DNA from: Macrostomum lignano
Taxonomy: Eukaryota
NCBI GenBank assembly: GCA_002269645.1
Contig: NIVC01000655.1
Location: 1-64,000, forward strand
Direction: 5' to 3'
Length of the DNA: 64,000 bases
In this document: one piece after another, positions 6,678-63,930 of the stretch
Numbering within the stretch: the stretch's first letter is position 1
Layout of the letters: each line of letters begins with the position of its first letter
Translations under genes and position numbers: made by a program
The notes under the pieces: generated by a model
Databases searched by the model: none
The model's input: only the letters and a program-made list of their open reading frames with translations
Told to the model about the DNA's origin: nothing

Positions 6678-6732
<55 letters not shown>

Positions 6733-6787: not shown

Positions 6788-6818
<31 letters not shown>

Positions 6819-6849
6819 TAGTGTGTCTTTCTAGATCTGTCTGCTTGCC

Positions 6850-6898
<49 letters not shown>

Positions 6899-9800: not shown

Positions 9801-10045
9801 GCGGCAGTGGTAGCGGCAAGTCAACTATAGTGCGACTATTGTACCGCTTCTTTGAGGCCCAATCGGGTTCTATTCTCATTAATGGTGTGGACATTCGGCA
9901 GGCTAGTTTGGGCGAGCTGCGCAAAGCTGTTTCTATTATACCGCAGGTAAAATATTCTAGGGGTATTCGGAATTGCAGTAGTAGTAGTTAGAAGTAGTAG
10001 TAGTTACTAGTAGTAGTAGTAGTAGTTAGTAGTAGTAGTAGTTAC

Positions 10046-10109
<64 letters not shown>

Positions 10110-10157
10110 TAGAAGTAGTAGTAGTTACTAGTAGTAGTAGTAGTTAGTAGTTACTAT

Positions 10158-10203
<46 letters not shown>

Positions 10204-10235
10204 TAGTAGTAGTAGTAGTTAGTAGTAGTAGTAGT

Positions 10236-10290
<55 letters not shown>

Positions 10291-32371: not shown

Positions 32372-35300
32372 TCATTCCAGCGCTAACTGATGCAAGTGCA
32401 TCCATATTTCTCCGGCATGCTTGCAGTAAAGGCTTTCGTGCCAGTCATCGAACACTTCATAGCCTGGGTAGCACACTGAAATCTCATTTAATGGCATTTC
32501 TCGAACTCTTGGTTGACTACGCATCTCCAACTTCACGAGGGCATGCAGTTTTTCCATTAGAATACTTCGCTGGTCTCTCAGGTCAGTAGGGAGCGCGTTC
32601 TTGAGTTCCGGACTTAAGGGCTCTGAGCCATCGAATTTACTCGGTTCAAAACCGTCATCAGCCAGGTGCTGCCAGAGGTGGTGATCAAGCGACAACCACA
32701 ATAGTCTAATGTGCTCAACAGTCACGTGCCGACGAAGAGACTCGCTTGGGAGTCCGTCTTCCATCCTAAGGCTCGAAGTCATAAATTCATGAAGCAGCAT
32801 CTGAGGATCAAGTTTAGATCGCACTGAGATCAGGAAGTTCACTACCACCTTAAGGGATTCATCCAGTAAAGCAGTGATCACGGGCGTGGCGAGCCTGCGA
32901 TTTAGTGCATTTTGTGTCTGGCTGTCTTTAACTTCTTTCGCCTGCGGAACCACCCGTTCCAACTGCTCAAAGAACTCTAGAAGGTTGAACTCCTCTTTGT
33001 AGACCATCTCCTGGAGGAAGCCAACGATTCGAACGCGACCCCTAACGAGTCTTTCCAGCAGTTGCTGCTCCAGTCCATGGAAGTTGTACGCCACCTGGCA
33101 TCCTTCACCTTTACGCAGTGAGTAGGTACAGTTGGCGAGCAGCATTGGCAGTAGATCTTCATCTGGATCAAATTCAATCACACTGGCAGCATCGACATTT
33201 GGCAGGTCAACTTCGTCCAGTTCGATTCCGCTGGCCTCCATTACGGCATTGTGAGCGTCTACAAGCAGCTGAACCAACCCAATAATACACCTGCCCCATG
33301 GTCCTTTGTGCGGCAAAAGTGCGGCAAGAGGAAAATCGGAATTCGCTTCAAGGGCATGCTTCTCGACCTTTCCGGCATCTCCACTACTAAAGCGAACTCC
33401 TCGAGTAGCCAGCAGATGTCTCAGCTCATTCCAAACACGAATGAAAACTTGATATGCGTCAGGATTTCTGCTACAACGCGTTCGCGCGGCTGAAATTCTC
33501 TGATTCTTTGACGCCTTCAGCTCCTTGTTTCTTTTCCAAGCGGATACGAGCTCGTTAACCATATTCACCAAGACAGGAAGCTCTTTGACATTCCGAAGCA
33601 CGGGTTCCCACTTGATGATCGCATCAGTCAGCCTGTACTGACCTCTCTCGTTGCCTCCGAGCTCCTGGAAGGCTTGTCTCGCGTTCTCCACTGTAATAAT
33701 GCGACGGAAACGCCACAAAAGCGCCTGTGTGTCGCTAGTGTCGCGTTCAGAAGTCTCATGAATTAGCTTCACGATTTCCGAAGCAGTTCCCGAGTCGTCA
33801 TGGCTCACAATCCTGTTTGACTCGCGGAGATGGTCGTCCAAGTTGTCGAGAATAGGTTGCAAAAGACTCGCGTACATGCGATTTTCGAATGCCCGTCGTT
33901 CTTGATCTTTTTTTAGGTCAAACCCGGTCTTTTCGGTGCTTTTCTTCAATTGCATTTCAAGTACCAGGTGCAGCGTGTGGTATGCATCCTCCTCACTGCG
34001 ACCGGTGCTGCCAGTAAAGAGCCGCAGTCCTGTCTTGAACTCTTTAACGCTATCCTCGTGGTTGTCTTTCATGAGGGCCAGGCTTTGAAGCAGCCGTAGC
34101 AGCGCCACACTGCAGCCAGACAGCTGGCGTACTGCTTCAGGTCTTGTCGAACCAGAATCCAATGCCACAAAGTCCTTTTTGGTTTGATCCATCGACTCAA
34201 ACTTTTGATTGCCTTCAGCCGAAACATGGCGCTGACCGCCGATTGTGCTGCCACAGTCAAAGCAGGTGCCCGTGTCCCATGGTCGCGTGCACTGCGAGTT
34301 GTGAATTGGTTTTTATTCGCTGTCAGTCTGTGATAGCTAAATTAAAATTTTTAGTCAATATTCCTTGTCTAGCCAGCACCCAGCAATGGCTAGAAGAACT
34401 TTAGCAAAACTTTTTTTGCAAAGCTAGAAGATTCATATTGTTTTATTTTTGCTAAGCAAAAAAATCTAAAAGTAAAAATTATAGATTTTATTAGGTACCT
34501 CAGTTCATCGCGTTTTATTCAGACGTTGTACCTCTATACCATTTTACCTCTTATTCTGAACAAAGTCTTGTTCAAAAGAAACAAGCAGAACTTCAATTCA
34601 AACACTTTAAGAAATCTCAGCGCTTGCCGAAATTCAGTTTAAACAAAGTCCCTTTCTATTGAAACAGATGAAGTTCAATTAGGACTGTCTGTGGTCAAAA
34701 TTGTCCCTGAGTGAAGCGCACGTGCAGCTTTGAAATTCAAAAGAAACAAAGTTGCATTCTATTTTGGCAAAGAGATATCGATGAGCATAAGAGTAAAATG
34801 TCTAACAGCAACGAGTCAATGTCAGTTGGTCAACTTGAGCCACCTAACCATCAATTTTCTGTCCACCAAGGCAGCGAGGGACGCATGTAAACATGCTTGA
34901 ACCACTCAGTGCACTTGTCCGCAGAGATGCAGCCAACGGTTCTGTCCACCATGCCATAAAGGAGGTCTTGCCATCCTTGGGCTTCTCTTCCGCTCTGCCT
35001 GACCTCAATCATGTACGGGTATATTGACCTCTTGACTTCAAGTTGGCGCGCCAGTTCCACAAAGTCATCCGCACTATCAGCAGCCTTGATGATACGGTCT
35101 CTGTCACTGTTGGTTAGAAAAGCGTACTGCTGAGACTGCTGTTCCACGATCTCTTCCTCAAGTTATGCTTCAAATTAATCGATTCCGTCCTCTTCCACCA
35201 ATTTATCGTCTTCTTCAATCAGATCTTCAACACTCACGTTAATTATTAGTGTGCAAAAATTGTACAGTTATGTAGTACATTGAAAGTTAAAACAAAAAAC

Positions 35301-41300: not shown

Positions 41301-44300
41301 GATCCCAAGTCTTGATCATAACTTTAGCTCTTCCCTTCTTCACTCGTATGACTGTAAAGATAATGATATTTTAATATCCAATCACATATACTAAATCGTT
41401 TCTAAATTCACACTAGAAACGACAGACGCAATTATCACAAACAAAATAAAACTGTAAGAACTTCAACAAATATAAACACAAACGAGCAAGGAAATATCAC
41501 TCACTTCACCAATGTAATATGGATGGCCATTTGGACAAACTGAAATTGAATTGGACAAATGATTAAGTTGAATAGTTCTTTTATAAAACTGGCTATCATT
41601 GTAAGATTTTATATGTATGTTAAATTAAGATAGTTTTAAAGAGTCTGAAATGACTTTGAGTAGCTAAAATTAATTAATATTCGTATTTAACTACTAAACC
41701 TTTTCTCGTCCAATTTCAACAAAAAAACATTTCTTTTTAGATGAGACGATATTCTTTTTAGACTCTCTGGTTTGGAGCACAGCTCCAAGCATTCAAATTA
41801 GACAAACTCAAATTCTTTTTAGCCAGTAAATATTCAGTTTAGACACATACTTTAATTTTGGCTTCGGTCTATGGTTATAAGTTACTGCTTGCAAACAAAT
41901 TGTCATTCAATTTAGACAAGCAACATTCTATTTCGTCACAAGGAAAGGGCCGGACTGGCTAAAAATGTGTACGAACCTAAAAACCTGTCGCTTCTTTCAA
42001 ATCACCATGTCGTCTTTTACTGTTTTTTTATTTAAAACCAAATGAAAGAGAGAGAGACAGAGATAAAGAGACAGATATGCAGAACAAGAGAGCAAGAGTG
42101 AGAGAGAATAAGACAGACAGACAGACTGCGCGTCAAACATAGCGTATGTTCTGCCCCCCTTTGATCGCTTTTCTCTTCTTCCCGATCGGACGATGGAATA
42201 TGCCGTAGTTCTTTTGATTCCCATCCTCTCCGCTAAGTAAACAAAATCCTCACCAGTCTCGTGGGCATCCAGAAGTCGTGCTCGATCTTCGTTGGATATT
42301 CTCCTATAGGGCCCTCGTCGGTCTTGTTCTTCTTCAACCCCTTCTTCTACATCACCGAGCTCTTCTTCGTCTTCTCGAATTTCTTCGATAATCCCATCTT
42401 CATCTTCTACATGTACCAAAGCGGCCATCTTTTTCTTATAAAATGTGCGAAGTAGATTTTTTAGTGTGTACTTTTAAAAGTTATCGTTGGAAAAGTTAGA
42501 AAAGGAAGAGTGAGCCTGTGCTTGGTGTCTAAAATGAATGTTGGCTGTTTAAATTGAATGTGCCAACACCCCCATATGACACTTTTAACCACAGACGTTT
42601 TATTCCCGCACAAGTATGTGTCTAAACTGAATATTCACTGGCTAAAAATAATTTGAGTTTGTATAATTTGAATGCTTGGAACTGTGCTCCAAACCATAGA
42701 GTGTCTAAATCGAATATCGTCTTGTCTAAAAAGAACTGTTGTTTTGTTGAAATTGAACGAGAAAAAAGTGTACCTATGATGATAAAATAAATTATTTTTT
42801 AGCCATGGACGCCCCAGAGGTTGGGCTGCCGTGCTTTTCAACCTCATTTGAAGGAGGTTGAAAACGTTGTACACGTATACTACATGTACAGTTTCGTCTA
42901 TTTATCCAACTCAGGCTTTGCTCCAGAACATGGAGGATGGAGTATTCGCCTGTAGAGGGTCTATGGTCAAAGCTCAGAAACGCCTTGGGATTTAGCTACC
43001 CATTAAGAATTCTATTAGCTGGAAAACTCTACAAATATCTCTCTCGCTCGTTCATGGCAGACACATCTTTTAGGATTTGCTCATGAAATTTATATGCCCG
43101 ACTGTAGATTATTCCTGGGGGGAGTATTTGGGGGAGTAACCAATGTTTAAACAGTTTTACAGTTTCAAAATGGTGAGTCGAAGCTGATCGAGATTAGAGC
43201 AACAGACCTGAACTGATATGCTAGCATAAACGGTGGAATCAGGCATGTGCTCGTAAACTTACCGTAGGCGCCAAGGCGTTCATTTAGCCTCACCGCATTA
43301 AAAGCCTCAAACAGCTCATCGTGAGGCATTGCTGGGAGGTACCAATCACAGCGGTGCTTTGCCAGTTGCGACAGAAATTCTGTGAAGTCAGACTTGCCCT
43401 TAGACGTCAGCAAACAAAAGTAGAAATGGATAAGCAGAGACTTTGTCTGATGTCCTTCGAATGAGTTCAGTTCGACCGCCCTTAGCTCCTTGGCCAGCTC
43501 CTTAAACGTTCAAGGCAGTTTCAGGGTCTAAATATGGAGTCTGCAAACTATTTTAAGTTAGAGTCAGACATAGAATCTAGTGCGACTGTGGTCCAGAGAG
43601 AGGAGAGAGCAGTGTGGAGAGGAGGGGAGAGAGGAGAGAGAGGAGAGGGGAGAGAGAAGAGAGGGAACAGGAGGGGAGAGCATGATACCAGACCGCAGAC
43701 CTAAGTTCATGGATGAGACTAAGACCTATAGCAAATGCTAATGAAACTGATCTGGCTTGCTTTTGGGCTTTTACAAAAACTCTTTTTGTTGCAGATAATT
43801 GTGCAATTTTTCATGCCGAGTTCTGGATTAGCTACAGATACATGTACTCGTACATGCATCAATGATCAACTAAAACAAAAGCCTTCCAATTTATTATACT
43901 TCGGTCGTCACTACCAAGACTGTAGTAAGAACTTGCATTGCCTGTGTCAGAAAAGTTATAACTAAGCCGATCAAGTCGAGAATCCACATTCGCTGCGGCT
44001 TGATCGGCTAAATTATCAACTTAACTGATAAAATCAATCCTCAAATGCTAAAATCTGCTGTCAGTAACCTTTGAAAAGGATGTTTCTGGGTAACTAAAAG
44101 ATACGTATCAATCCTACCTTTGTTTCTGGCTTCATCAAGGTCTCGATGCTGTCAAGGCAGTGTTGCAGCTGATTTCGGTTCACTTCCATAGGGGCGTGGT
44201 GTATTAGATTTTCCCAGTTGACGGCAGCCAATGCAATAACGCAGTTTTCTTGGTCGAAGTCTCCTGGTTTCTGTGACGAATATAAATAAAGGAATAGTTT

Positions 44301-47300
44301 TTGTTTAGAAACAATAGCACCACAATATTGCTATTGAATGATATAGGTCCTATATTGATAATGTATATAATAGCTATTATTAATTTATGGATACAAAAAT
44401 TCTAGTGTATAGCCCTCTGCACATGAAATACGTTTTCAGAAAACATTTTACCTGTGCATCCTTGTCGCCAGATAGATAAGAGCGCCATAGAAAGCGTTTT
44501 ACTTCTCTGTATTCCTCCGAGTGGCTCTGCAGTAAGTCGGGCATCGGCGGTGGGCCTTGGTTTGGGTCAAGTTCAGTAGCGAAAACATCCGACAAAAATT
44601 CGTCAGTTTGCAGGCGCTCAAGCGTAGCGCAGGTGCCTCCAGCCATGCTCAGACTGCGGAGGAAGAAAATCCTGCTCCAGTCATGGGTTTTTAAGATGTC
44701 TGATACTTGTTGGTAAAGATCTATGCCTGAAATATTTATTTCAATAGAGACAACTGGTGATTCTTTTGGAAGCCGAACAATTGATGCTGCAAAATTTGAA
44801 AGAAATATTCTGTGATCAACAACTCTGTGCAGAAACTCGGTATCTAAACATTCGACAGTCGTAGGGAGCTCTGAAAACTTCAAAAACGAGCCTCTCAGCC
44901 TGCTCTCTTCATCATTTTTAGCGGATTTAAAGTAAGCCAAATCCTCCAGACAGTTGAGAATGACAAGTTCTAACTCTTGCTGACTTTCCGTTCCCATGGC
45001 ATTCGCTGCCTCCTTAATGTGCTGCGATAGTTGGTTAACGACTTCATCGTAGTTAAATTTCAAGAGTTGCTGCAGAATAAATGATCTGAACACGGGAGAC
45101 GGGTCACGGTCATCAGAGAAGAAGCCAAACACGGTGGCCTCAGACGAGTTTCTTGTCACGTATGTCAGCAGATGCCTGCACAGTTCCTCGTCTGGAATCT
45201 CCAGATGAGGTTCTTCTGGGCTGTTTCCTGCTGGAACGTCAGTCTTGAAGCACAGCTGGGACACAAGTTCTAGCATGAAAAAATTGCATCTGGCTTTAAA
45301 TTTGTCGAGAGCTTCGGGCCTAGCAGAGTTGATTGCTGCTGGGTCAAACTCCTGCTTGCACTTTGGACACTTGCTCGTACCATCGTCATCTCCATCCGAC
45401 TTTGGTAGACAATCTCCACAGATTCGGTCATTGCAAGGAAGAAGCGTCAGTCGATCATTTCGTTTTTCACACTTTGAGCAGGTTGAAGTTCTAAAAGGTT
45501 GCCATTTCAGTTTAGACTCGATGGAAGTATCTAAATAGCTTGTTAAAATACTGTAGATGTAGATGTTATATAAGAAATTCCCTAGTCACAGAAGACATAC
45601 ATGAAGGGAACAAGCTGACCTTACATAAGATTAGAATTTAATAACTTCAAATATTCTCAATAAACTAAGGGAGAATGCATTTCTCAGTTCCGAAGCGTTC
45701 GCTAATACTGACGGGTAGCTGAGTAATTTTACCTTTTATCTACAATTGTGATGATGAAAATAACAAAGCAAAGAATACTATGAAGGTTTAAATTGATCCC
45801 AGCACAGCTTGTTGTTACTAAACTAAATCTGCGACATCGTTTGCTTACCCGGATATTTTTTCTGTCAAATTCTTGTTCGCATCCTCCAAAAAGTTTTCGA
45901 CCAATCGAATTCCACCAGACTTCTTGAAGCTCAAGTCCGGGTTTTTTAGGAGGGACTGAAAGTTAAATTCGTGGCCATGTATATATCGTTTACGTATAGC
46001 AAGTATATTGATACCAAATAAATAACATTATAATATTAATACAAGTAATTCCACCAAATATAATATAATTCAGTATAACCTACACAAAGCATTTTCAGGG
46101 GTATATTTTGCATCATAGAACTTACATTCCAGAGTCGAATCGGCTTAATTGATGATTCATTTAGTTTTTCTTTGTCAAAAGGTGCTGAAACATTCTTGAG
46201 GAACAGAACAACACAAATAACCTTGTCCCATCGCTGAGCCATATCGCCTTTTCTGTGCCTATGCAGCAGTCTGGAGATTATTGCCTGTGACTTTTCAAAC
46301 AGGTCAATCCACTCGCTACGTCCCATTGCTGTGTTTAGAGACAGTTTCTTCTGTTCAAATATCTCGATGAAGGCGCAGAATGTTGCCTAAAATGAAACTT
46401 GTCATTATAGATAGTCAAATAAGTACACTATGAAAGTAAATTCCTAAACTACTTTATCAATGCGATACTAAAGCGTTACAAGTATACGAGCTACAAGCAA
46501 ACGAACAAACAAATCTTAGAAGTTTAGCTAGTACATGTAATAGGCGGAAGAAGCCCTACCTCTGCTAGATCTCGTAGATGATTGACTGGTGGCAGCTTGC
46601 CGACCAACCCGTGTGTCTTTTTTGCGAGTTTGATAAACAAGTCAATCTGACTCTTGAATTCCACTGCTGTCCCAATGCTTGCACGAATCGCTGATAAAAG
46701 TGTGTCACCTAACCGATCACTGATGGTCGCTATTAGAATTTTCTGCAACACAATAGCTTCACTTTCCGCGATAGATTGGAACTTTATATGCAAGAGGTCA
46801 TGACAGAAGCTTTCAATAAGCTCTCTGCTGACACCCCGACTGGCGAGAACTTTTTGGAGAGCTGAGTCTTCAATTCCTTGCATGTACTGGGGACCAGCCG
46901 AACGCTTTGTGTCCTCAAAGCTTTCCAAGTGACTCAAAACGGCCCACGAAAATGGAAATTTGCTGGAAAAGTGATGGCCATCAGAAGCAGAGCTGAACAC
47001 TTCGACTCTGTTGACCTCCAGCTGCTCCTTCATCAGCTGATCAGTTGCATCGTCGAAAGCTGATGCTGGCTCGAGAAGTTGCAGCCAAAGATCTCTCGTA
47101 TCCGAACACACATAGTTCTCCAGATTGCTGTCCTTGTCAAGGAACGCCAAAAGACAGGCAAAGGCTGGCGCGACCTTCTGTTTCAGGATTCGCCATATGC
47201 TCTCTCTGAAAAATGAAACAAAACGGGATAAAAAGCTCTCTTAATAACTTGCTTTACTTAATTAAGAAAGAATGCAAGCTCAGTAACACATGAGCTACGA

Positions 47301-50300
47301 GATAGATAGCATTATTATGACTAGGTAGCATTCTAGAACACGTGGAACATATTTTATTGTAGATATTCTAGAAACAAAGCGTAATCCTAGAATTTTATGC
47401 ATCCTAAACGAAACGGCAAACCGGCTTAGTGCCCGGGCAGGGGCTTTAATTGTCTGCGGGGCCAGATGTACGTTACTGGATGATCTTGGCTTTTTCTTGA
47501 TAGGAGATGAAAGTGTGGGTTTTAGAGTTTTTGATAGTGCTGATTTCAAACTTGCAACCAACTCGGTTTTTTATCTACGAGCTAGCTTACATGTGTACCT
47601 ATGTAGCTCAAAACCAACCCTGGGACAGGGAAATGTAGTGAAATAAACAAAGGATTAATTTAATAACAATCTACCGCCGCGGCCTAACTAAGTAAATTTT
47701 TCATCAAAATGTTTCATTAGACAAGTTTCTTAACATTCAACTTGTTATTGTGAAATCAGCTTTGACAAAAACTCCAAAGCAGCATATTTTAATCCTATAC
47801 CAGAATACAAAACTAGTAAGAAGTTAATAAAAAAACTTATTAAATAGATAGTACGAAATATTTGACACGAAGTAGTTAAAACGCTTACGGAATAAAAACT
47901 GCCATACCAGGGACAAACATTTCTATAAAACGTTTTCGTATACTACATTGAAATGCATAGCGAAAAATCAAGGGGTACTGTACAGGTCGAACTAGTAATA
48001 GGAAGTATTTTACTAGCCTAATCTTCAAGAAGTCTCTTCGTGGTTTGCGTAATTGTGTAATCTATTTTTATTAATAGTATTGTAAAAGGAAACTTACATC
48101 AATGTCCCAGCCTCTAAAACATTTTTACTAGAAGCAGCAATTTTGGTGAGCCATGCTTTCGGTTCATATTTGTACGAATTTTGTTGACTTTTCTCTTTCT
48201 TCTGCAAAGCCATTTGCAAAAATGGCTCAATTTTACGCAGAAACTCAGAATCTGGAAAACATTGGAGTGTAAATAAATTTTAAGGAAATAAATTTTGTCT
48301 AAGACATCAGTCAAACCTACCATCTAATGCCGAGATTAAACAGTCTTGTCTGTGCATCGGCCGTGCTTCATCTCCACTTCTGTCGTTAAGAAGGCTAAGA
48401 GCAGTGAAAAGCGTATCCTTTAACAGGAGTTTTGTATTTGCCGGCTTGCGCAACTCCCAATGCAATATATTCTCGCCATCATTAGCCAAAGTGTCAGCCT
48501 CCTCGCTAGACGATGGGAATAGTTTGTTCAGAGACTCCAGCTCATTTAGCAGGCGCACATTTAAGCGACTTGGTTGCAGAAGCTGCTCAATGTGCACACA
48601 GTGCCAGAGACCACAGTCGTACCCAGAGAAAGAGTTGTTCAGACTTCTCACGAGTTTTATAATCAGAATGATTTTGCGTGAACCGGCGCAGTCTGTATTC
48701 TGCCTGATCTCCTCTTCAATTAGGTGCTTCACACAGTAGATCAAATCCTGATAGCCAGTACCGACACCTTCGTACTGCAAAATGAGTGTCTCATTCGACT
48801 CTCTACTGTTCTTTAGGATTTCAATGAACTGTGATTCAGTCTCGCACACGTTCAGGTTTCTGTGCGCTACTCGTCCAAGCTTTGAAATCGAGGCTGGCAG
48901 CTGATTTAACTCTTCAGTATTGAGGAGTCTGTCAAATGTGGTGATCTGCAGAAGGGGTGTTTGAAAATTATGCACTTCAAGAAACGATTGGAGGCACCCA
49001 AGACCACAGATTTTGAAGTATTGCTGAAGTAAACGCCTTCTTTCGTTATCGTCATTCACTCTCAACAAGCTGTCGGGAGTAGCAACGGCAAGAATTCGGC
49101 TTTGCAAGGAACTCTCTGAAGCATCCACCTCCAAGGACAGGGAAGGAATCATGTCTTCGTGAAATCCGACAAACACACCAGCAAGTTTTTCTCCCTGGCT
49201 AAAGCCTTCAGCCCATGCCCGCTGTTTGGCGCAAAACTCTTGCTTCTGGCGGTCCATCAATGCCTGCGAGGTCAGCTTGTGCTTCTCCAAACGATTAATT
49301 AACGGAATGGGAAACTTCTCATTCACAGTGCGATCGTCAGCAACAACGATGATTCGAAAGTTTGCATTTACCCTGCTCTTAAGCCTGTGGGTTCCTAAGC
49401 CAAGATCGACAAACCTGTTGCCACTGCACTCCTCATAGCATAGGTTAAGCACATCGTAGAGTGACTCATAAAGCGCCTCTAGGTTCATAAGAACGATTGT
49501 GCTTCCGCGCTCCATACAGATCTTTATCCGGTTTATTGTCTTGCATACCGTTGTGTACTCTTGATCTTTTGGAAAGCTGCTGCCAAAAATTATCTTCAGC
49601 TCAACGTTGCTAAGAAGCTGCTTCAGCAGCTTGACTCCAGAGTAGTTCTCTGCTATGAGAAGCAGGTACCGCTGATCAGGACCCGTGGAATGCAATGCAT
49701 CACTTAGTGGAGAGTAGTCATTGAGGTCTGCCTGAATTGATCCATTTGTTGAACAGTAAAAATTCACAGGATCGAACTTGTCCAGACCACTAAAGTTTCG
49801 TAACAATGCTTTAGCGACATGGTTGTCGCCGATGACTTTTCTCGCCTTGGATTCTTTGAGCAGATGCTTCAGTAGGCTGAAATAGTCTCGGAGCCCGAAA
49901 AACTCTCGCTCAATGTTTGGTCCGCAAAATATCTTCAGATAGAATTTTGTCAGGGGTTCCACGTACTTACCAATGGGCTCCACTCGTTCTTTGCAGATTC
50001 CTTTGGCGGTTTCAATAAGATCTTCATGAGTGGGAACATCCCGCAGCAAATACAATCCTCTGTTCATTTTTGCCGGGTCTAGAGCCCAATTAGATATGCC
50101 AACGAATCCCACTTTACGGCATAGTCTCTGTGAAGCACTGTCGCCTGCTTTGCTGGATTCAGAGCTTACAGGAATGCCGTCTTCTAGTAATGGATGCAGC
50201 ACTTTTAGTGGCATTTTTGGTGAGTCTTCCGCCAAACCAATCTCGTCTAGAACTACCACAGGAACAAACTCAGAGTCTTTGAAGTTTTTCTGTTTGTGCG

Positions 50301-53300
50301 CACACTCAGAAAATACCTTGATAATGTCTTCCGAAGTAGACCAAGGAGAGCACTGAAAAGACACTATGTCCGTGCTGGGTAACTTTCTGAATTCTTTTCC
50401 TGATGAATTTGAACCAAGCATATTGCTTCTGACAATTGCTTTAGAAATTGATTTTGAGCTTCCAGGTTTTCCCACGAGAAACAATGGAATTCGAAGCGAG
50501 ATGCTTATAGCCATCATAAAAACATTTTCTCTCAGGGCGTCGTTCACTGCCAATGTGCTTGGTAATCGAATGTCATGAATAAGCGTTCCTTGAAATTGCT
50601 TGATCATTGAAGTAAGCTCAATGGGACTTTTCACAATCTGTAGAGCTTTGAAAACGTCTTTTAAAAATGGGTCGTTCTGATCTCGAGGCAAGCGACTAAG
50701 ATAGCAAATAGAAACAGATATAATGACAGAAATGTCGAATCTTGAGAGCGAACTGTCGCCTGAGCATTTTTCTTGATAATTACGAATGAGGTTTCCGCAT
50801 AGAATCCAGTGAAACAATTGTATTTCCCGCTCCACCTCTCGTAGTGAAACGTATTTCGTTTCATCATTCATCTGTCGCATGAATTTCTGCGCAGCCGAAA
50901 TCACAGTCGTTAATTTCTGCTTCTCGACGTCATTAATCATTTCTAGACGCGAGCTAACCATGCGCTCGATGTATTTTTCCTCTGCTTCTTCAGAGAGATT
51001 TCCGAAGTCCCAGAGAACGCAAGTAAGCGACAGGGGCAGCGGCTTTACTCTGTAAACAAGGTGGCGCATAGGAATGTCTCCGAATTTGTCTTGGGTTTCT
51101 TCCTTTCTCACCCGGTAACCGAGGCCGCTGTTCTCCAGTCTGTCGATTGTCGATTTGGGATGCTTGCGGTACGGGTTGCAGGCAGCTACACAACGCAGAC
51201 CGCTCTCGAAATTGATTTTCCTGCCGTTAATCCTGCCATCGAGCATGATCTCCTTTATAAGACCGACAAAACTGGTTGTGTTAACCTCGTCGAAAAACAG
51301 AATGGTATAAGGAGATCTCTGGCCAATTGGCTTTTCATAGTTTTCCTCAGAAAGCTTTTCTGCATCACTGACTGCTTCTTCAATATCCTCCAGAGTAACT
51401 CCGCCATGAACTTTCAGCACGCGCATATTGTCAGGACGAAGGGCTTTAGACTCGAATTTGGGCAGGATAATTCGTGCAAGAAACTCGACAAGCTTCGTTT
51501 TTCCGCACCCAGTTTCCCCCATCAAAACAACGGGGATTTTGCTTCTAAAGCGCATATAAATTGCAAGTATTTTCTTGACGTTGTCCATCGTGAGCTCATA
51601 AGATTTATCGGGATCCTGAAAGTCACTTGACTCGGCGAAGCCAAATACCATTCTCATCCTTGAAATCTTCTCTGCCCTACTTAAATCATCAAACTTCTCA
51701 TTGATTGGAACTTGTTGTGCTACCAGTCCATCGCGCAACTGTCTTTTGATCATTTCTTTCTGCAGAACTTGGCCCGTATTGCTATCAACCAGATTTCCTT
51801 GCTTGTCAATTGTGAATCCAAAAAACGTGAATGACTGACCATCCTCATTAAACAAGAGATATGGATGCGGCTCTTGCTCCCAGTGGCGCCTGAGCTGAAA
51901 TGCTGACACGCTTTCTTCCTTATCAGCTCCAGAAGCGCCACTTTCGTCGGAGCAGTCAATTGATCGAGTAGAAAAGTCCTTTGACATCAGCAGCAGCAGT
52001 CTCAGAACAAAGTCTTTGAAGCCAGGCAAGTCTCGCTCTACAAGAGCACTGCAGAATATTGACTTCTTCATGTCGTTGAATTGGGTTTGATAGAAGCGAG
52101 AAAAATTAATTAATTCTAACCACGACGGGTCATTAACACCGCAGTGTGAGATCAGTGAGCGCAAAACACTCGAAGCTCCGGCAGATGACATAGAGGATGC
52201 AATTTCTTTGTACTGATCGATTCTTTTTGTATACAAAATCAGTTCTTTTGGAACAAATGTTTTTAAACTGTTTGCTTCCTCCAAGAACTGCGCTGGTGTG
52301 AGACAGTTGACTCTGGGAAGCAAATTAAGTACCTGAAAACGTGACGCCACTTGCTTGTTCTCGGAATGCTCTAGCAGATACAAGTCATTTGGCCTCCTTC
52401 TCCATACAAATCCATTAGAGTTTACAATGGCACCGAAGATTGCTAGCTGTGTGATACAGCTGTCAAATCCAGTCTGTACTTCTCTGGCGATGTCCAGGTG
52501 AAAAACAACTGGTGAATCCTCGTTACCGCTGTTCAAAAAGAACTGATACACTTCGTCAGCACTTAGATGCGCGCCACTGCAGCAGAATACCAACGGCTTG
52601 GGACAGCCTCTCCATACCGAAATGTTTTCACAGAGCAACGACTTTCCCATGCCGGAACGATCTGAGGAAATCCACAGAAATTTGCTGTTCTGCATATTCT
52701 CGGCATCTGCAAGGAAGCCTTCCACAAACTTCTGCAGCTCATCCTCTTTTAAAGACTGAGTTGAAAATTCTTGGGCGTATGAGCTAAGGCAGTTGCAGAA
52801 AGGAAACTGTTTTTTCCTTTCTAGGCCAAAAATCACAAAAAGATGAGATTGGATCCTTCCATTTACTCTGTTCATGAGTCTGTTGAACTGTTCCTCCGCC
52901 ACAACAGACAGATAGTTTGGAAGCTTGTCTGCATTGATAATGATGTACAAGGATTTAGGATTTGGGTCCAGGATTGCTCGATGCAAAAACACAATAAGGT
53001 CTTCCTCTGCAGTGTGCTCGCTGCAGCAAAGAACTTCCTCCATTTGTGGCAACCTACTGAATGCCTCTTTGAACAGATGAACTGCCGCCAACAGATGCTT
53101 TTCAGACTGCAGACTTAAGGACACTGGCTTTCCTGTTTGGAATGCTTTCCCAAATTCATCATTTAGCTTCTGTTTGCTACTTCTGTTGTTCTCTAGAGAT
53201 GCGAGAGTCGAAAGAAACAGATTTACATCATAGAAACTGAGAAAGTCGCTGTGTGAGGAATGGATATTGTGCAAGTATATTTTCCAGAGCTTCCTGAAAG

Positions 53301-56300
53301 CCTCGTGAGCCGGCAGATTGCCTATCTGCGCAGCATTCAGATCCTGGTCTGCAGTTTTCCAGTTGCTCTCTGCCTGTTCTTTTGCCTGGGAAATGAAATC
53401 TTTCTCAACCTTCCCTGCCAAGTCCGTGGCCTGTTCTATCAGTTCGTCAATGTTCTTTGCGGCTACTTCTGGGTTACGAAACAGAATCTGGACAGTCTGA
53501 TCAATCGTTTTTTCATCGTACCCGTCATTTGTCAGGGCGCTTTGAATTTTTTGTATTGAGCTTTCATCTTGTACTGAGCCCGCTGAGCCTTTGGCTCGCT
53601 CAGTGATCACACGAGCTACCGACTTATTCACTACAGACTCATCACAGTTAGGAAAGATAAAATCCAGTAGGTGCGCCGTTCGACTATCCAGACTTTCGAT
53701 TCCTTTTGCTGACGAAAAAATCGAAGCCAGAGTTGTTTGCAGAAACTTTATTTGCTGTAGAGAAAAGAAGTTTAAATACGTGTGCTCCATTCTTACTGTT
53801 GCAATTAGCTCCAACCACTCGACCAGACAGTCCTTAAAAATGTTTGACAGGGAAGTCAGCCCGTCCTTGATGTCTTCGTATTTGTACTTAATCACCTTGT
53901 GTGGATTGCAGTACCGCAGCTCAATGCTTACGTTTGTCTCACTCTCTGGCATAAGCTTGACTTTAATAGCAATGTTCTCACAAAGGACACAGCAGTGCAG
54001 TTTAAAAGCTTTATAAGCGTCTACCAACTGGAAGGCGCTCTCCATCAGATTGACGAATCTCTCTAACTGCTGCCTCTGTCCACAGCCTTCACCAGCAAGT
54101 AACATCAGCTTTGACTGCAGATTTTTTATGTCTTCCAGATCCCATTGCTTCTTGCCATCTCCTGACGGCATTGTCAGTTTAAACGGCTCGCTGAACTTTA
54201 CAAGGCATCCAATTTCAATAACTCCGTCAATAAGAATAGCTTCGATTTTCTGAAGAGTAGATTTCTCCACCGATCCTTGGTTTTCTTTCACGTCTTTAAG
54301 AAATTGAAGGCGGGCTCTTGTCTCTTTAAGATGCTGCAGGATGTTTGGTTGCTGCTTACTTTTATCCAAAATAGGCATTACAAGCTTTATTACATCTTTC
54401 AGACTCGTTGGGTGGGAGGGAGTTCTATAGATAATGCTTGCAAAATCCTTTGCGACGGAAACAAACAGCTGGACTTTTTCCTGCTCACTCTCTCCAGAAT
54501 CTGCAAGGTAAATCATGGCAAGGTTCAAGAAGCTGTTCAGTTCTTCTTCCTTAAAGTTTTCGCGTACCCAGTTGAAAAACTGGCAGCTTTCGCAAATTTC
54601 TTCGATAAAATCTGCCAACATTGGCTCTTTGTAGAGCTTCTCTAATAAGCCGTGCATGGAAGATAAATTTCTTGGACGAATCTCTTTTAGTGGCAGGTCC
54701 TCGCTCAGTTGGGTTCTCAGAGTGTTGGCTGTTGAGAATAACTCTTCATCCTGAGTGATTTCAATGCTGAAAGCGTCAGAAAACTCTTTAAGAGCAAAAG
54801 CAACTTTGCAAAGCTTTCGCATTTCTTCAGCTGCAGAAAGCTTCTCAATAACGTCAATTCGCTGGCTCTTAATATCGCTGCAGTATTGTAAAAATACAAC
54901 AATTTCTGCATTAAGATTTTCTCTTCGGTCATCTGACAGCAAGTTTCCCAGTAAACGTCTTGCATCAGCTAATGTAGCATCACCAGTAACTACAGCTGTC
55001 ACATCCCCGGCCCAAACATCTTCAGCTTTTTTCAGGCACTGTAGAATCTCTTTCAATGAAAGCTTTTTTTCAGAGTCTTTGTACCTGCTTTCAACCAGCC
55101 TGTTAAATACTTCCTTAATGGTGCGACTGCCGCGAGATCTTTCCAGAAAGTTTATGGACGAAGACATCAGATCTTCAGCGACAAGGTCTCTAATGAACGG
55201 CCTTTGTGGGTTTCTGACTGACTCTTCAGTCAATTCAGCAAGCTGCCTGTTCCTCAACGAATCAACACTCAGCCTTTCTTTAAATTTTTCCATATCAACT
55301 GCAAGTAAAGCATAAGGGTGGCTGCTTTGATTTTATTGCATTTCAGTGGCTTTACTAAATGTATTAATTTAGTGTTTTAAAGTGAAATCGAAAGCATAAG
55401 AAGCATCATGAATTGAAAAGAGTCAAAACTTGAAATTTTAAATTTTAAATTAGCTATGTCATGATTAAATTGCAGTGATTTTTGCTTCTTCGCCCTTTCC
55501 TCTCTCTCCGTCCCCGCGAGTTACATAATACGAGGGTTCATAGCCCCTTCATACTCACTACTTTGCAAGGGACAACTTTGAGCAAGCTTACACTCTAGAC
55601 AGAGATATGTATCCTATTTAGCGAAACTATTTAGCGCTCAAGGGGAAGAGAATGAGTGTCTATGGTAAATTTTTAGAGAAAGCGACTTCAAATTCGTCTG
55701 AGTAAGTGAACTTCGTCAGTGCAAATGCAGCCTGATCAGAAAAAGTGTTTGCTTTGTCCATGGTAAGAAAAGAAGGTGTCTATGGTAAATTTAAGTAAGA
55801 AAGTGAGTGAATTTCGTCTCTTGAAAAGTAGCCCAATTTCTTGAAATCTTCATTTCATGCTTTGATTGTTGTCAGAGATGCCTACATGAGAATTTCGTCT
55901 GTGGATCGCTCTAGACTCGTGCGATGTTTTCAACAAGGACGAGACTGGAGACAACTCGCAGTTGAACTGGATATCAAGAGGACAACTGCCAGTGACATCA
56001 TCAGAAGATATACTCAGCAGCAGTGAAAAGTCGCCACTCTATGCGCCAGTGAGCAATTTCCTTTGGACTATTCTGAAATAACAGATGCGAGAAAACTGAT
56101 TGGGGTAGCTTTAATCCGTCCAACTCTCGCACACCGCTCCCCCACTTCATTCCTCAACTCATGTCTGCCGCGGGGGTAGCTAAGTTGAGTCACTCGCAAA
56201 GATTGAGAGACTTTATCTGCACTCTCAAAAGTGGCGACCACAGACGGAATCTTTTGAGATGGCGACTTTTCGATGTTGCTGAGTATATGTTGATGAGGGT

Positions 56301-59300
56301 AGGATTGATCTTAATGCGCGTGGAGGTGCAGTGAGACCAAAGTTTTCTGAGATGCTCGGGGCGTTGACGAGGTATGTGGAAGAGAAGCCGACTGTGACCC
56401 TCAAATAAATTGAGCAAAAGCTTGTTGCAGATTTTCTTGCTCCTCCTGCTGTGAAAATGCAGGCAATCAGTCGTTGGCTTGACGGGACTTTGTCCATTAC
56501 ATTGAAGGATGTATATTCTGATCAGGAATTCTGATCTGATCACGAATTCGAAGTCACTTTCTCTAAAAACTTACCATAGAAACTCATTCTCTTCCCCTTT
56601 TAAGCGCTATATAGTTTTGCATACGCTGACGAATTTTAACTCACTTTTGATGAATCCGAAGTTGAAAAGGTATAGTACTGAGCTAACATGGAAAGCCATG
56701 AGCCATGCCTTCCAGTTCCAGCTAGGGCCAAAACTGTTCGCAGTTAAAACCAGATTGATTTCTGTTGTCTATGGTTTGTCTGTGTAAAATCTGTCTGTGT
56801 AATAAGTCACTTTAAAATACTCGTGATTGGGATAAGCGACTGGAGAATCTGAGGCTGACAAATTGAGAATCGTAAAAGACCGAGACAAAGGCAAAGGCTG
56901 CTTCCAAAAGAATTTTTGAATTTGTAGAAACTACGCTTTTGTTATGTATGTTACTTTTGCGGAAACTCTACTTTGACTGGATTTTTCGGTAATAAATCAC
57001 ACGTTATCAAATTTGAACTCACCAAAAGCTGTATCTGTTGATGTCTGAACAAACTCAACAAAGCCGTTTAGTAAAACAATTCTCTCATCTGCTTTTTGTT
57101 TAAGCCCATTCAGACGATCGAGCTGGGTTGGCACATCAGTTTTGCTCTTTAGTTGCTTAAACAGAACTTCGAGCTGAGTTTGTGAACTGAGAAGATAGTT
57201 AACGGCACCGAAGCGAATGGACGTTAATTCTAATAGACGCCTTGAAATCTCACTGGCTGCAGACTGACAAGAACTTAGGACAGCCATGGCATCGCCAGAC
57301 ATATTCTGCTTGAACTCCTCACGCTCTAAATTAATTTGAAAAAATTAATAAAAGTTTATTATGCTCGGGTGGGTTGGAAATAGTTTACTGGTTTCATTTA
57401 CGTCCTCTTTGCATTAAGAGTATGAAGAGATACTTAATTCAAAGCAAACGGCACTAATAGCCCGTTATATAAAATTATACTAAATTATACTAATATTACG
57501 CTAATACGAGCTACTGTGACAAGTGTCATTGTATTGAAATATTGAAATAACATTCAATTTATAAATGAAAATACCGTATCATATTAATATCGGTATGTTT
57601 TGCAGATACTAAATTTAATGTTTAGCTATAAGGTAAACAAGGCATGAAGCCAATTGTGGGATAACTTTTCGCGCTCTAAGCCAACCTTTGTGACTGTACG
57701 GAGTTTGCTTACAGCGTGGACTTCATGCACTGGAAACTTTTCTTTCGGAGGAGAGTCGCTTGAGACAGAGCATCATAATATTGTGACAGTGTGATTATTT
57801 TGCTCCGTAGGCCTATTTCTTAATACTCCTTTAGTTTGATTTTTTAAGCCCGCCAATGCTTTTTCAATTGTTTTTTAGTTTTTTGTTACGTTTTTTAAGT
57901 CTGCGATCCTTAGTTCGTTAATTTAAGAACTAAGTACTAACTTTTACTCGTACTACAAAGTTTTTTAGTACAAACTTTGGAGGTAAGACTAAAGGGTTGG
58001 AAGAATCCAGAATTCAGAAAGATACAGTACGAGCGTACGGTGTTGCTCGTCGAAGTTTGTCCGAGAAATTAACTTTATCTTTTAAACAAGCGATCGTGGA
58101 TCAAATTAATTATAAGGCAATCAACGTCTGAGTGCAAATACATACATTATTCGAGCAAAAACAACTTTGACTATGTAACGCATGAACCCTTGTAACGAAA
58201 TATTGTAGAGTGTTCTACCTCCCGTTAAAAGTAAAAAGTAGAAATCATAGAGACTACTGTAAGTAGATAAGTGCATGCATGCGCGCTTAAATCTGAAAAT
58301 GATGCAAGTCGCTATTTATAGCATATGAATCATGTTCCTATTTATAGCGAATGAGTCATGTTGCTATTCATGGCGACAGAATAATTCATGTTACTATCTA
58401 TAGTAATAAAATGAGTCATGTTACTATTTTTAAACGCAATCATTCTTATTTCCCCTTGTAGCGCAACAAGTGAGTCATGGTGAAGATGCCTATAAATACA
58501 AGCGGCCCAACGCGGCACCGGAGTCAACTCCCGACGATAGGAGGAGCTCCGAAGAGGGTGCTTTTAGAAAAACATCCTAGTTCACCAGTCAATCGAGACT
58601 TGGTTTGATTGTTGCGGTAAGCCTTTCTTATTTGCGCCAGTTGTTGTTAGAGACGTCTCGCTCTAGTCTATTGAGACTCGAGTTTATTAAAGTCTATTGA
58701 GACTTTTGAGTCTATTGAGACTCCCGTGGCTGTAGTCTCCAGAAGGACTACCCTAGTAGATCTTAGAGGAACTACTAGAGATATCCGGAGCATTACCTAG
58801 AGTGCACAGAGGCACTACTAGAAGAAGAACGCTATATTGATACCGCTATTAGGCGCAGGGTACCCATTGTTAAATCGAAGCTTCTGATTGGTCCAACGAC
58901 AGATACCGGCCGGAACCTACTTCAACGGAAGTACCAAGAGATATCGGACCAGATCAACATATTCTAGACGTCTACACTTCCTGAAAGACAGGAACGCAAC
59001 CAGCTGTAAGACTCACCGACAAGAGTCACCGAGGAGATCTCCCAGAAGAAGAAGACAAGGTAAGTGATATCTTCGAATACTAGTCGATTCGCCGAAAGTC
59101 GATTCGCCGAAAGGTTATGCCCGAGTTGATGGTCCTGTACTGATTGGAAGCTTAGTTTAATTTTATTAGAAAGATTAGTTTTATCAGTTTTATGCAGTTT
59201 TATTTGTTCAATTTTCAGTTGCTCTGACAGTTGCCCTGACAGTTGTGCTGACAGTTGTGCTGTTTCGATTTCTTACTAGCTGACTTACAGCTTACTTTTA

Positions 59301-62300: not shown

Positions 62301-63930
62301 ATTGGCCACTCAATGAGAAGTTTAAGATCAGGCAAAAAATCTATGCCGTCATTATCATTTGAGTTACTGGATCGAAAGCTCGCAGCCGTGTCGCAGACGA
62401 CGTCGGACAAAACGGAGTATATTTGTGGAGTTCTTTTCGATTGCTCAAATAGCTTCTGGAATGCTTTTTTCTGAAATAAACAGCAAATAAGCAATAAAAA
62501 GGCTGTGGATAGGACAGGAGTAAAAAATAGCTGACAAAGAAATTTCCGGCGTCAAATCACATGTCAACTTAAGCCTCTAGAGGAACGGAAGCGGATTATG
62601 AAGGCATGAGTTTAGATTCTGGTTCTACTTATTTACAGGTGGCACAAATTCAATCCACAGCTACATGCAGAAGCAGAAAAAAGCTCGGCTCCGGACCAAG
62701 CTGACTCCGATAGGGATTTCCAGTAAAGTTAAAGTTCTCTATAATCTAATAACACTTATTTATATAATTCAAGGTTCATTCAGAATCTGGAAAGGTCGCA
62801 AAAATCTGACCGTCTGACATCACTATCAACGAGTGAGTAAAAGCGTCACCATAACGAGAGGCGAAACAACGCCAAAAATGATCCGGTTTGTTGATTCTAA
62901 ATTGATTCTTACCAATGATCCGGAGTTGTCGAGATGCTTTGTCGGTTTTTCCAACAAGGAATTGAGAATGCAGATGGTTGCACAAGGCTGCATTGCTCCC
63001 AATGTTGAGCTGGTATCAAAAAAATCCACGAGCATTTCCTAAAGTTTGGGAGGGACCGCTTGTTATTATGCCTTTGTGGTTAAATTTTATTCAAAATCTT
63101 ACCTTTCCAAAATACTGAAGTAATCTTGTGAAATACTTTTGGAAGCATTCTGACAATTCTGCTGTGTAGTCAGACTGTTTAATTTGACGAAACATGCTGT
63201 CGAAATTCTAAAATTTCGGTTTTATATTCAACAGATAATTCAGATTATTTTTATAGTTTTCACATTTTAAAATATCTAAGTTTTAGAATGGTCCAAATAC
63301 TTACTCTAATAAGAGTCTCAAGCGTCTCATAGCCGAATGGCTGGCGTGGGGACTTACGAGCTCTAAAAGATTCTTCTATTTTTTCTAGGCTCTTGTTGAT
63401 TTCCTTATTATCTTTTTTTTTCTTTTTATGGCCCCTGCGCATCTTCTCTAGCTTGCAGGAAAGCATGCAATCAACTAATTGAAGGTAAAGTTCCACGTTG
63501 TCAATAGAACAAACTCGATCCCTGATGCTCCTTGTTATCAGCAGACACTGCTTGAGCTCAAAGTCTGTTAGTTCGCTCAGACTTTCTTGCAGTGAGCTAA
63601 TGACGCTCTAAAATAATAACCATGATGGTAAAAATAGCCAGCTGGGATATGCTGAGTTGAGCTCAATTTTTTCGGTAAAAATTTTACTGAGAAACGCGTT
63701 TGTAAATGAGATGAAAACTCACTGGTGCAGCTTCACTGACGGCCTTAAGTTTTTTTGAATCGCTTGTCAGTGACTGCAGAGTGGCAAGCTTAACCAATGC
63801 TGGAACTTTTCTCAACTTAAAAAAGTCGTTAATATAGTCGAAATGTGCAGTTGCGGTGAAAAATCTGCACAGAAGCGGGTCAACTTTTGAGTACTCGGCC
63901 AAAAATTGGTCCACACGGCCGTAGTCGTAT
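32372..63930 (-). CDS. RNF213: RNF213/mysterin-like giant AAA+ ATPase / E3 ligase, 5'-incomplete. Exons (high to low): 63723-63930, 63305-63607, 63103-63174, 62913-63038, 62275-62470, 57023-57325, 48321-55298, 48098-48251, 46560-47205, 46084-46386, 45849-45955, 44452-45550, 44118-44270, 43263-43500, 41505-41539, 32372-34291
   Basis: The 7-kb exon carries SDRSGMGKSL, Walker A GETGCGKT with FFDEVNTT, and GKPGSSKS with VLDEIGLAE, plus NWALDPAKMNRG and LYESLYDVLN. These are followed by a RING (45358-45480), YLPAMP, the RZ finger CPNGHPYYIGE|CTRPWDTGTCFDCGSTIGGQRH and a C-terminal domain with LLPHKGPWGRC and LLANCTYSL. All 15 introns are GT-AG with matching phases and the sum of 12,841 nt stays in frame to the stop at 32372. 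The five 5'-most exons are less certain and small exons may be missing. Confidence 0.92.
34537..35554 (-). mobile_element. Tc1/IS630-like deletion derivative, ~190-bp TIRs, TA TSD
   Basis: 34537-34725 is inverted relative to 35369-35554 (TACCATTTTACC.../...GGTAAAATGGTG), with TA on both flanks. The internal minus-strand HTH-like text reads LTNSDRDRIIKAAD...LARQLEVKRS. Confidence 0.75.
35934..39971 (+). mobile_element. Ngaro/PAT-type tyrosine-recombinase (DIRS order) retrotransposon with split direct repeats, frameshifted; antisense in the last RNF213 intron
   Basis: Repeat A at 35934-36085 = 39601-39755; repeat B at 39559-39597 ~ 39933-39971. ORF1 has SAP-like REKLSELGLSARGSKEKLI and CCCH finger CFDFNKTSGCARANCRYAHHCRRCGGQH. 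RT motifs are KVDLREAYW, RLPFG, CLDDF, FLGIEFDS; RNase H is VIESDSCKKG. The recombinase has LRKSSL, KTIQ, CPV, HSLRSGGAT, DWCSDAVQRY. Confidence 0.9.
40500..41180. mobile_element. Second, internally rearranged copy of the same decayed repeat family
   Basis: 40970-41170 aligns with 24885-25055 (ATATCTCGACGGTC...TTGAATTTTGTGT...AAAATGGCTTGGTATTCC). 40540-40720 aligns with the same family in the opposite orientation. Confidence 0.5.
41697..42770 (-). mobile_element. Tc1/IS630-like deletion derivative, ~155-bp TIRs
   Basis: 41697-41852 is inverted relative to 42612-42770 (...GAAAAAAGTG|TA). Internal ORF 41997-42428 reads RGPYRRISNEDRARLLDAHETGEDFVYLAERMGIKRTTAYSIVRSGRREKRSKGGR, a transposase N-terminal HTH. 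Confidence 0.8.
55620..56620 (+). mobile_element. Tc1/IS630-like transposase remnant interrupted by a MITE
   Basis: Inverted repeats at ~55620-55700 and ~56537-56620. After removing the MITE the coding reads YMRISSVDRSRLV...LDIKRTTASDIIRRY|VDEGRIDLNARGGAVRPKFSEMLGALTRYVEEKPTVTLK*. Confidence 0.7.
56011..56285. mobile_element. 275-bp MITE, TA TSD
   Basis: TACTCAGCAGCAGTGAAAAGTCGCCA at the left end pairs with TGGCGACTTTTCGATGTTGCTGAGTA at the right end; TA at 56009-56010 and 56286-56287. Confidence 0.8.
58326..59059 (+). promoter_or_regulatory. Putative antisense promoter / LTR-like fragment in an RNF213 intron
   Basis: TGAGTCA at 58352, 58412 and 58471, TGAATCA at 58326, TATAAATA at 58492-58499, and a strong donor AAG|GTAAGT at 59059/59060. 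LTR boundaries and TSD were not found. Confidence 0.35.
59075..59639. mobile_element. 565-bp MITE with 8-bp TSD and subterminal GTCGATTCGCCGAAA repeats (Merlin/Mutator-like)
   Basis: TSD ATATCTTC at 59067-59074 and 59640-59647. The ends are imperfect (GAATACTAGTCG / reverse complement GGTAACAAGTCG), with 2 left and ~4 right inverted copies of the 15-mer. Confidence 0.7.
59761..61843 (-). mobile_element. Mariner (DD34D) transposon, inactivated, with a nested hAT element
   Basis: TA|TTAGGGTGAGCCAAAAGTTTCCGGA at the left and a partial inverted copy at 61825-61843. The transposase has DKPRSGRP, AQDEK*, FDNVRPH-x-HPPYSPDLSPCD (34 residues between the Ds) and W..GI..LP.RW. It contains in-frame stops. 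Confidence 0.9.
60811..61506. mobile_element. Non-autonomous hAT element (696 bp) inside the mariner ORF
   Basis: Ends TAGGGGTCACA / TGTGACCCTTA; 8-bp TSD GTCCTGCA at 60803-60810 and 61507-61514; subterminal ATCCCGGGAT motifs. Removing it rejoins the mariner frame (HFHAGRKAAEA). Confidence 0.85.

Follow-up and report, generated by a model that had tools for sequence, protein, structure and literature searches.

What does the large minus-strand gene between positions 63930 and 32372 of a 64,000-nucleotide (nt) stretch of the Macrostomum lignano genome encode, and what might its product do for the animal? The stretch (assembly GCA_002269645.1, contig NIVC01000655.1, positions 1 to 64,000), hereafter the window, had been given a preliminary description that saw in this gene a full-architecture relative of RNF213, or mysterin, in a probable flatworm. 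RNF213, known as the main gene of susceptibility to Moyamoya disease, has lately been recognised as a mammalian immune E3 ubiquitin ligase that ubiquitylates bacterial lipid A. We find a protein-coding RNF213/mysterin gene of a macrostomid flatworm, whose last 16 exons lie in the window, and give this reading a probability of about 0.88.

Family assignment

Searches of the Protein Data Bank (PDB) with the giant seventh exon of the gene returned RNF213 at E = 5e-293, the sole other match being ClpB at a marginal E = 2.5e-4, and apart from ClpB all PDB matches were RNF213 chains with E-values from 5e-293 to 0. Amino acids (aa) 1130-4209 of the spliced model align in a single stretch to residues 1784-5086 of mouse RNF213 (7oik_A, a chain of 5161 residues; E = 0), a span that begins with the AAA core and continues through the hinge and the E3 module to the C-terminal domain, and aa 296-938 align to residues 1025-1679 of the same chain, its N-arm and linker (E = 8e-18). 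The product is predicted to be an RNF213/mysterin-family protein with a six-AAA dynein-like ring, a hinge, an E3 module, an RZ finger and a C-terminal domain. Membership in the family, rather than in an unrelated AAA family, had been proposed in the preliminary description and is borne out by the search against RNF213 structures; the C-terminal domain it had listed is likewise present, the mouse alignment reaching residue 5086 of 5161.

Gene structure and exon model

We rebuilt the gene independently, using tblastn with M. lignano relatives and then choosing, for each gap, the GT/AG pair that kept the frame and maximised similarity. The relatives named below are P0001 (A0A1I8JAF5), P0015 (A0A1I8J8S1), P0002 (BOX15_Mlig016388g2), P0286 (PAA73448.1) and P0288 (PAA60863.1), besides others given by number. 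The result is one large gene on the minus strand, from 63930 to 32372, in which 16 exons are joined via 15 introns, and both the exon count and the two ends are those of the earlier model. All 15 introns follow the pattern GT(A/G)...AG, with a GC content of 22-47% against 45% in the coding sequence, and the spliced coding part comprises 12,772 nt and reads through 4,256 codons free of internal stops. The earlier figure of ~4,280 codons was right as to an open, in-frame reading and high as to length, a gap that we put down to the 20-codon difference between acceptors 44330 and 44270 of exon 13. The exons, with two candidate polyadenylation signals read from the sequence, are as follows.

63723..63930, minus: exon 1, an internal exon; acceptor TTTCAG/A in phase 2; similarity to P0015 begins exactly at the AG
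63305..63607, minus: exon 2, N-arm region; junction peptide SEAAP/SVISSLQ as in P0015; intron GTGAGT...TTTTAG
63103..63207, minus: exon 3; junction TLIR/NFDSMFRQ agrees with P0015
62913..63038, minus: exon 4; junction YFGK/EMLVDFF agrees with P0015
62275..62470, minus: exon 5; motif LIEWPIAACLLDF common to paralogues and mouse RNF213; the mouse alignment starts in this exon at model aa 296
57023..57325, minus: exon 6, after a 4.9-kb intron; both junctions collinear with mouse RNF213
48321..55298, minus: exon 7, giant (6,978 nt); linker, AAA1-AAA6 and start of the hinge; the PDB match to RNF213 given above
48098..48251, minus: exon 8, after a 69-nt intron GTAGGT...TTCCAG that takes out two in-frame stops
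46560..47205, minus: exon 9; contiguous tblastn match to P0002 and P0003
46126..46386, minus: exon 10, from the tblastn and junction search
45849..45955, minus: exon 11, from the tblastn and junction search
44452..45490, minus: exon 12; RING and E3 shell
44118..44270, minus: exon 13; preferred acceptor 44270, the alternative 44330 adding 20 codons
43263..43500, minus: exon 14, from the tblastn and junction search
41505..41539, minus: exon 15, a 35-nt micro-exon, VCPNGHPYYIGE; the RZ finger's first half, including the C4505 and H4509 equivalents
32372..34291, minus: exon 16; second half of the RZ finger, C-terminal domain and TGA stop (32372-32374); opens with the codon of the catalytic Cys
32140..32225, minus: two candidate AATAAA poly(A) signals, ~150 and ~230 nt past the stop codon

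A mechanical scan for open reading frames (ORFs) found stretches of 2,341 codons (48310-55332) and of 646 codons ending at the stop at 32372; exon 7 would be free of stops by chance at the same base composition with a probability of ~1e-62. The acceptor of exon 13 appears to be the sole ambiguous junction in the model: the upstream candidate at 44330 has a slightly higher local-alignment score but adds 20 aa of low complexity, and P0001 joins at the equivalent of 44270, so 44330 was rejected. Exact-protein look-ups for spliced transcripts, made with P0015, P0001 and the 2,328-aa ORF of exon 7, returned no record. Pfam gave no further domains for the first 1,138 aa, for the hinge or for the C-terminal domain, and scans for tRNAs and tandem repeats over the gene region gave nothing relevant.

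Several introns contain repeats. Within intron 15, a GC-rich element of 3.8 kb (35934-39752, ~53% GC) lies between direct repeats of 150 bp with 95% identity (35934-36083 and 39601-39752) and carries broken plus-strand ORFs with one weak RVT_1 match (E = 0.007); it is probably a decayed retroelement antisense to the RNF213-like gene, and it contributes much of the 7.2 kb of this intron, which splits the RZ finger. The same intron holds inverted repeats at 34538-34764 and 35327-35553 (227 bp, 87% identity), and intron 14 holds another pair at 41701-41852 and 42612-42765 (154 bp, 91% identity) that encloses a minus-strand ORF of 158 codons (42000-42473) with no Pfam match; both pairs are probably remnants of transposons of the terminal-inverted-repeat type. 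A remnant of a mariner/Tc1-type DDE transposase was detected in intron 5 (59836-60720, minus strand; Transposase_1 E = 5e-12, DDE_3 E = 5e-6), with frame-shifted N-terminal pieces upstream of it.

ATPase sites

The AAA motifs were compared by alignment to human RNF213, with residue roles taken from PMC12075652 and PMC11549300.

51496..51519, minus: AAA3 Walker A, GETGCGKT (aa 1674-1681); human equivalent of the Lys: K2426; identical to human GETGCGKT
51274..51303, minus: AAA3 Walker B, ILFFDEVNTT (aa 1746-1755); human equivalent of the Glu: E2488; human ILFFDEANTT
50449..50472, minus: AAA4 Walker A, GKPGSSKS (aa 2023-2030); human equivalent of the Lys: K2775; identical to human GKPGSSKS
50224..50259, minus: AAA4 Walker B, VVVLDEIGLAED (aa 2094-2105); human equivalent of the Glu: E2845; human VVVLDEVGLAED

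AAA3 and AAA4, the two catalytically competent sites in mammals, are thus predicted to be intact here, and the tandem AAA modules with both catalytic Walker A/B pairs that had been described align to the human motifs.

RZ finger

The human numbering of the RZ finger was set by an offset in the aligned chain, fixed on the first RING cysteine, C3997. The flatworm finger, YVCPNGHPYYIGECTRPWDTGTCFDCGSTIGGQRH, aligned to human YTCPNGHPCSVGECGRPMEQSICIDCHAPIGGIDH, conserves all four zinc ligands (equivalents of C4505, H4509, C4525 and C4528), as well as C4516, the nucleophile, and H4537, the general base; the roles of these residues are those reported for the mammalian enzyme (PMC11549300, PMC12075652).

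34289-34291, minus: catalytic Cys of the RZ finger (model Cys3618), first codon of exon 16; human C4516 equivalent
34226-34228, minus: general-base His of the RZ finger (model His3639); human H4537 equivalent

The finger is spread over three exons, with the codon of the catalytic Cys directly after the 7.2-kb intron and the C4525 and C4528 equivalents following it in exon 16. Pfam ZnF_RZ-type (PF20173) scored 67.2 bits (E = 9e-19) on the spliced product against 33 bits on the last exon alone, and because splicing raises the score in this way the junctions of exons 14-16 are independently supported; the RZ finger that had been recognised at the outset is thereby upheld. The single RZ cysteine that is absent in the worm corresponds to human C4511 (mouse C4457), reported as neither conserved nor required (PMC12075652). 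We conclude that the Cys/His active site and the zinc ligands of the finger are, as predicted from the alignment, intact.

RING finger

The RING is a different case. It is present, as had been stated, although in altered form.

45358..45480, minus: RING-type finger CSKC...LPCNDRICGDC...CPKC (aa 3133-3173), from alignment to human RNF213
45427-45429, minus: RING zinc ligand 4, Asp3150; human counterpart His4014

The worm has LPCNDRICGDC against human LPCDHVHCLRC, so that Asp stands in place of His4014 and the other seven of the eight ligand positions are conserved; the flatworm RING is, as predicted, a non-canonical Asp variant. Aspartate is able to bind zinc. Across 44 family representatives with a recognisable RING, the ligand-4 residue was His in 36, Asp in 7 and Ser in 1, and the Asp type was found in M. 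lignano paralogues, in the bivalves Mercenaria, Sinanodonta and Pecten, and in Limulus. A private degeneration of the worm RING was considered and rejected, the same residue being present in the bivalve and Limulus homologues. In mammalian RNF213 the RING is dispensable for pathogen ubiquitylation (PMC11549300).

N-terminal part beyond the window

What lies at 63930 is a phase-2 splice acceptor rather than a start codon, and P0015 has 508 further residues upstream of the equivalent point, so the gene extends past window position 64000. The full protein would be roughly 4,760 aa long, with its last 16 exons and 4,256 codons in the window. The epithet full architecture in the preliminary description went too far: about 508 N-terminal codons, the part that holds CBM20 in mammals (human residues 378-515; PMC11549300), fall beyond the window. 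CBM20 was sought in the N-terminal part of P0015, where Pfam at E <= 1 gave only noise and phmmer against 26 full-length family members gave no match, and a single-sequence AlphaFold2 model of that part was discarded at a predicted local distance difference test (pLDDT) score of 36. The first 295 residues encoded in the window had no detectable match to mammalian RNF213. We also considered 63930 as a spliced-leader trans-splice acceptor at which the mRNA starts, and rejected it on the phase of 2, the lack of a nearby ATG and the in-frame continuation of P0015 upstream.

Comparison with mammalian RNF213 and ZNFX1

Set against mammalian RNF213 (human, 5,207 aa; mouse; PDB 6TAX, 7OIK, 8S24, 9JWG), the flatworm protein is collinear from the N-arm and linker to the C-terminal domain, shares identical Walker A and near-identical Walker B motifs at AAA3 and AAA4, and keeps the RZ zinc ligands with the Cys/His dyad. 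It differs in having only moderate identity beyond the AAA3-AAA4 core, in a shorter chain (~4,760 aa, the part outside the window being estimated from P0015), in the Asp at RING ligand 4, and in a gene with a single 7-kb exon. The human RNF213 gene has many exons across the region that matches this exon. ZNFX1 also has the Cys/His dyad in an RZ finger (Pfam PF20173; PMC12075652) but is a superfamily 1 (SF1) helicase, whereas the flatworm protein is predicted to form a six-AAA ring without a helicase domain.

Paralogues and invertebrate relatives

The first two protein-database searches used a word prefilter that kept 8,000 candidates and therefore gave few matches, and all proteins listed by the third, which was used to compare AAA3-AAA4, were under 1,000 aa. 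Among the matches listed, the nearest relatives of the window's product were M. lignano P0001 (89% identity over 2,536 aa) and P0015 (83%), and the best matches, which were M. lignano proteins, spanned 83-95% identity, in keeping with the flatworm origin that had been surmised. Both have the same exon-junction peptides as the window gene, and both are fragmentary models that skip parts of exons 7, 9 and 12; among the public proteins matched, none is identical to the window's product. More distant paralogues were as follows, with identity to the window gene.

P0002: 47%; a matching giant ORF/exon of 7.1 kb
P0286: 44%
P0003: 42%
P0004: 41%; RING sequence the same as in P0137
P0104: 37%
P0288: ~33%; 5,142 aa, 'RZ-type domain-containing protein'; clusters with P0138

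M. lignano therefore has at least 5 RNF213-like lineages, at 33-89% identity to the window gene, which agrees with the earlier suggestion that the gene belongs to an expanded family; their database entries are all unnamed or 'hypothetical'. Three kb upstream of the P0002 gene (10001-18613 of NIVC01004256.1), on the same strand and outside the public model, an ORF of 896 codons was observed at 4126-6816 (plus strand). The P0002 annotation may lack N-terminal exons, a gap also present in the other fragmentary models of this family in M. lignano.

Genes annotated as RNF213-like are on record from clams, mussels, scallops, a sea anemone, corals, a sponge, hemichordates, a tunicate, a crinoid, a tubeworm, a nemertean and Limulus, and homologues also occur in Glomeromycota fungi and the protist Amoebophrya. 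Such genes are thus already known from sponges to hemichordates, and because they are so widely annotated the mere presence of the gene here is unsurprising: the flatworm gene is an added member of a widespread family. The rnf213-alpha-like genes of the bivalves Ruditapes, Mytilus, Mercenaria, Pecten and Sinanodonta, and of Limulus, Lineus, Exaiptasia, Amphimedon, Saccoglossus and Ptychodera, resemble the flatworm gene in forming multi-copy families, in an identity of 40-46% over AAA3-AAA4 (among the matches listed) and, for Mercenaria, Sinanodonta, Pecten and Limulus, in the Asp-for-His RING. They differ in belonging to other phyla and, for the clam genes, in having expression data after exposure to PAMPs (molecular patterns associated with pathogens; PMC7430831). 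Our literature search found no paper that connects RNF213 with Macrostomum or flatworms.

Possible function and alternative explanations

If the flatworm protein works as the mammalian enzyme does, ATP binding at AAA3 and AAA4 would switch the E3 module on (PMC11549300, PMC12075652), a ubiquitin-conjugating enzyme (E2) of the UBE2L3 type would hand ubiquitin to Cys3618 of the RZ finger, and His3639 would help to move it onto hydroxyl or amino groups of the substrate, the RING not being needed. Should the worm's substrates include microbial surfaces such as lipid A, which is speculative, the protein might coat invaders. We regard pathogen coating by the flatworm protein as plausible and speculative, and an immune role in the flatworm as an extrapolation made wholly from mammals.

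Several points weigh against our reading of the locus. The exon junctions were predicted from genomic sequence and similarity to relatives, and the M. lignano proteins that support them are predicted, fragmentary models. Whole-gene intactness is only partly covered, since the 5' end of the gene, its start codon and its promoter lie outside the window. The RING lacks its canonical His ligand, and its best Pfam match, zf-C3HC4_3, scores 22.1 bits, below the cut-off of 27. Our literature search yielded no data from any flatworm on how the gene is expressed or induced, or on its E2 partner or substrates, and a preprint ascribes non-immune roles to mammalian RNF213, in lipid droplets, hypoxia and NF-kB signalling (bioRxiv 10.1101/2021.05.10.443411).

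The alternative that survives best keeps the enzyme and changes its task: the main job of the protein in the worm would be housekeeping or the response to stress (lipid-droplet regulation, proteostasis, signalling) rather than pathogen coating, and the immune inference first drawn would then fail for this paralogue. The window sequence is silent on immune regulation, and the presence of at least 5 divergent paralogues means that functions may be divided among them. However, RNF213 transcripts of the Manila clam respond to PAMPs (PMC7430831), the family is expanded in symbiont-bearing bivalves (PMC9993606), such expansion is typical for immune genes, and the complete catalytic set for lipid A ubiquitylation in mammals is conserved in the worm. 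We judge a mainly non-immune job to be a real possibility whose chances fall somewhat short of even.

The remaining alternatives concern the gene itself. It is very improbable that the 16-exon model fuses two adjacent genes, such as an AAA ATPase and a RING/RZ protein, or crosses a mis-assembly at the 7.2-kb intron. Public M. lignano models of the family are indeed split into fragments (P0015, P0001, P0002), and a long intron, with the 3.8-kb repeat element in it, separates the two parts of the RZ finger; however, the order and spacing of the modules are collinear with the single-chain mammalian protein, P0001 covers the gene from the giant exon through the stop codon with identical junctions, the two RZ halves complete each other only once spliced, and one M. 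lignano paralogue is a single model of 5,142 aa. Equally slight is the chance that the gene is a decaying, non-functional duplicate. The M. lignano genome is extensively duplicated (PMC5730564), introns 5, 14 and 15 carry repeat or transposon insertions and the 5' end of the gene is outside view, but against this stand 4,256 stop-free codons, canonical splice sites at 15 of 15 introns, the conservation of every catalytic residue checked, and a closest relative that is 83-89% identical across its length without frameshifts. As for another giant AAA family (dynein, midasin, VWA8) or ZNFX1, the ATPase part has only generic AAA domains in Pfam and the RZ finger is found in ZNFX1 as well, but the PDB matches (RNF213 chains and the weak ClpB hit), the mouse alignments of both stretches, the joint presence of RING and RZ, and the Pfam result of AAA-type domains only, with no helicase domain, rule such an identity out for practical purposes.

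Other features of the window

The plus strand of the window carries further genes. At ~5547-11300 we detected a multi-exon orthologue of ABCB7/ATM1, the mitochondrial iron-sulfur cluster transporter, with ABC_membrane and ABC_tran Pfam matches; its best PDB match was human ABCB7 (E = 8e-67), and several minisatellites lie within its introns. Two plus-strand ORFs, one at 16711-17256 with a sub-threshold RIC3 Pfam match (25.4 bits where the cut-off is 28.9; E = 2e-5) and one at 23842-24579 with a match to amiloride-sensitive sodium channels (ASC/DEG-ENaC, E = 1e-11), are probably exons of two further genes.

Between 3293 and 28994 there are ~18 separate minisatellite arrays of 230-900 bp, one every 0.9-1.7 kb, whose units differ and measure 3-36 bp; the tandem-repeat scan found no arrays of this kind in the RNF213-like gene. 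Where checked, they lie in introns of plus-strand genes, just past the 5' splice site, with donors at ~7372, 8652, 9946 and 12967 followed by arrays from 7375, 8691, 9977 and 12985. The 5-mer GAATC/GATTC occurs in 8 of 15 units of at least 15 bp, whereas shuffled units averaged 0.7 and never exceeded 5 (0 of 5,000 shuffles reached 8); when the best-shared 5-mer of any kind was counted, the maximum across 2,000 shuffles was 7. In M. lignano, 15% of the genome consists of tandem and simple repeats (PMC5730564). We found no explanation for the shared core motif of these minisatellites or for their position next to donors.

Implications

The flatworm keeps the ATP-sensing sites and the RZ Cys/His active site of RNF213, whereas the canonical RING histidine is not kept. 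This pattern supports the view that the enzyme's ancient core is its RZ-based mechanism rather than the RING.

A further-reaching proposal is that the Macrostomum paralogues, at least 5 in number, all of them having a RING of the mollusc/chelicerate Asp type and an ATP-gated RZ transthiolation site that is intact, represent an ancestral bilaterian system that coats intracellular microbes with ubiquitin, the paralogues being specialised for different targets. We consider this doubtful, with perhaps one chance in a few of being right. If it were true, M. lignano would be the first invertebrate for the genetic dissection of ancestral RNF213 function. The animal is amenable to RNA interference. 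Transgenesis is also established in it (PMC5730564), and the question of what RNF213 was for before there was interferon can be taken up in such a tractable flatworm. The main value of the gene described here is as an entry point to ancestral RNF213 function in this kind of animal.

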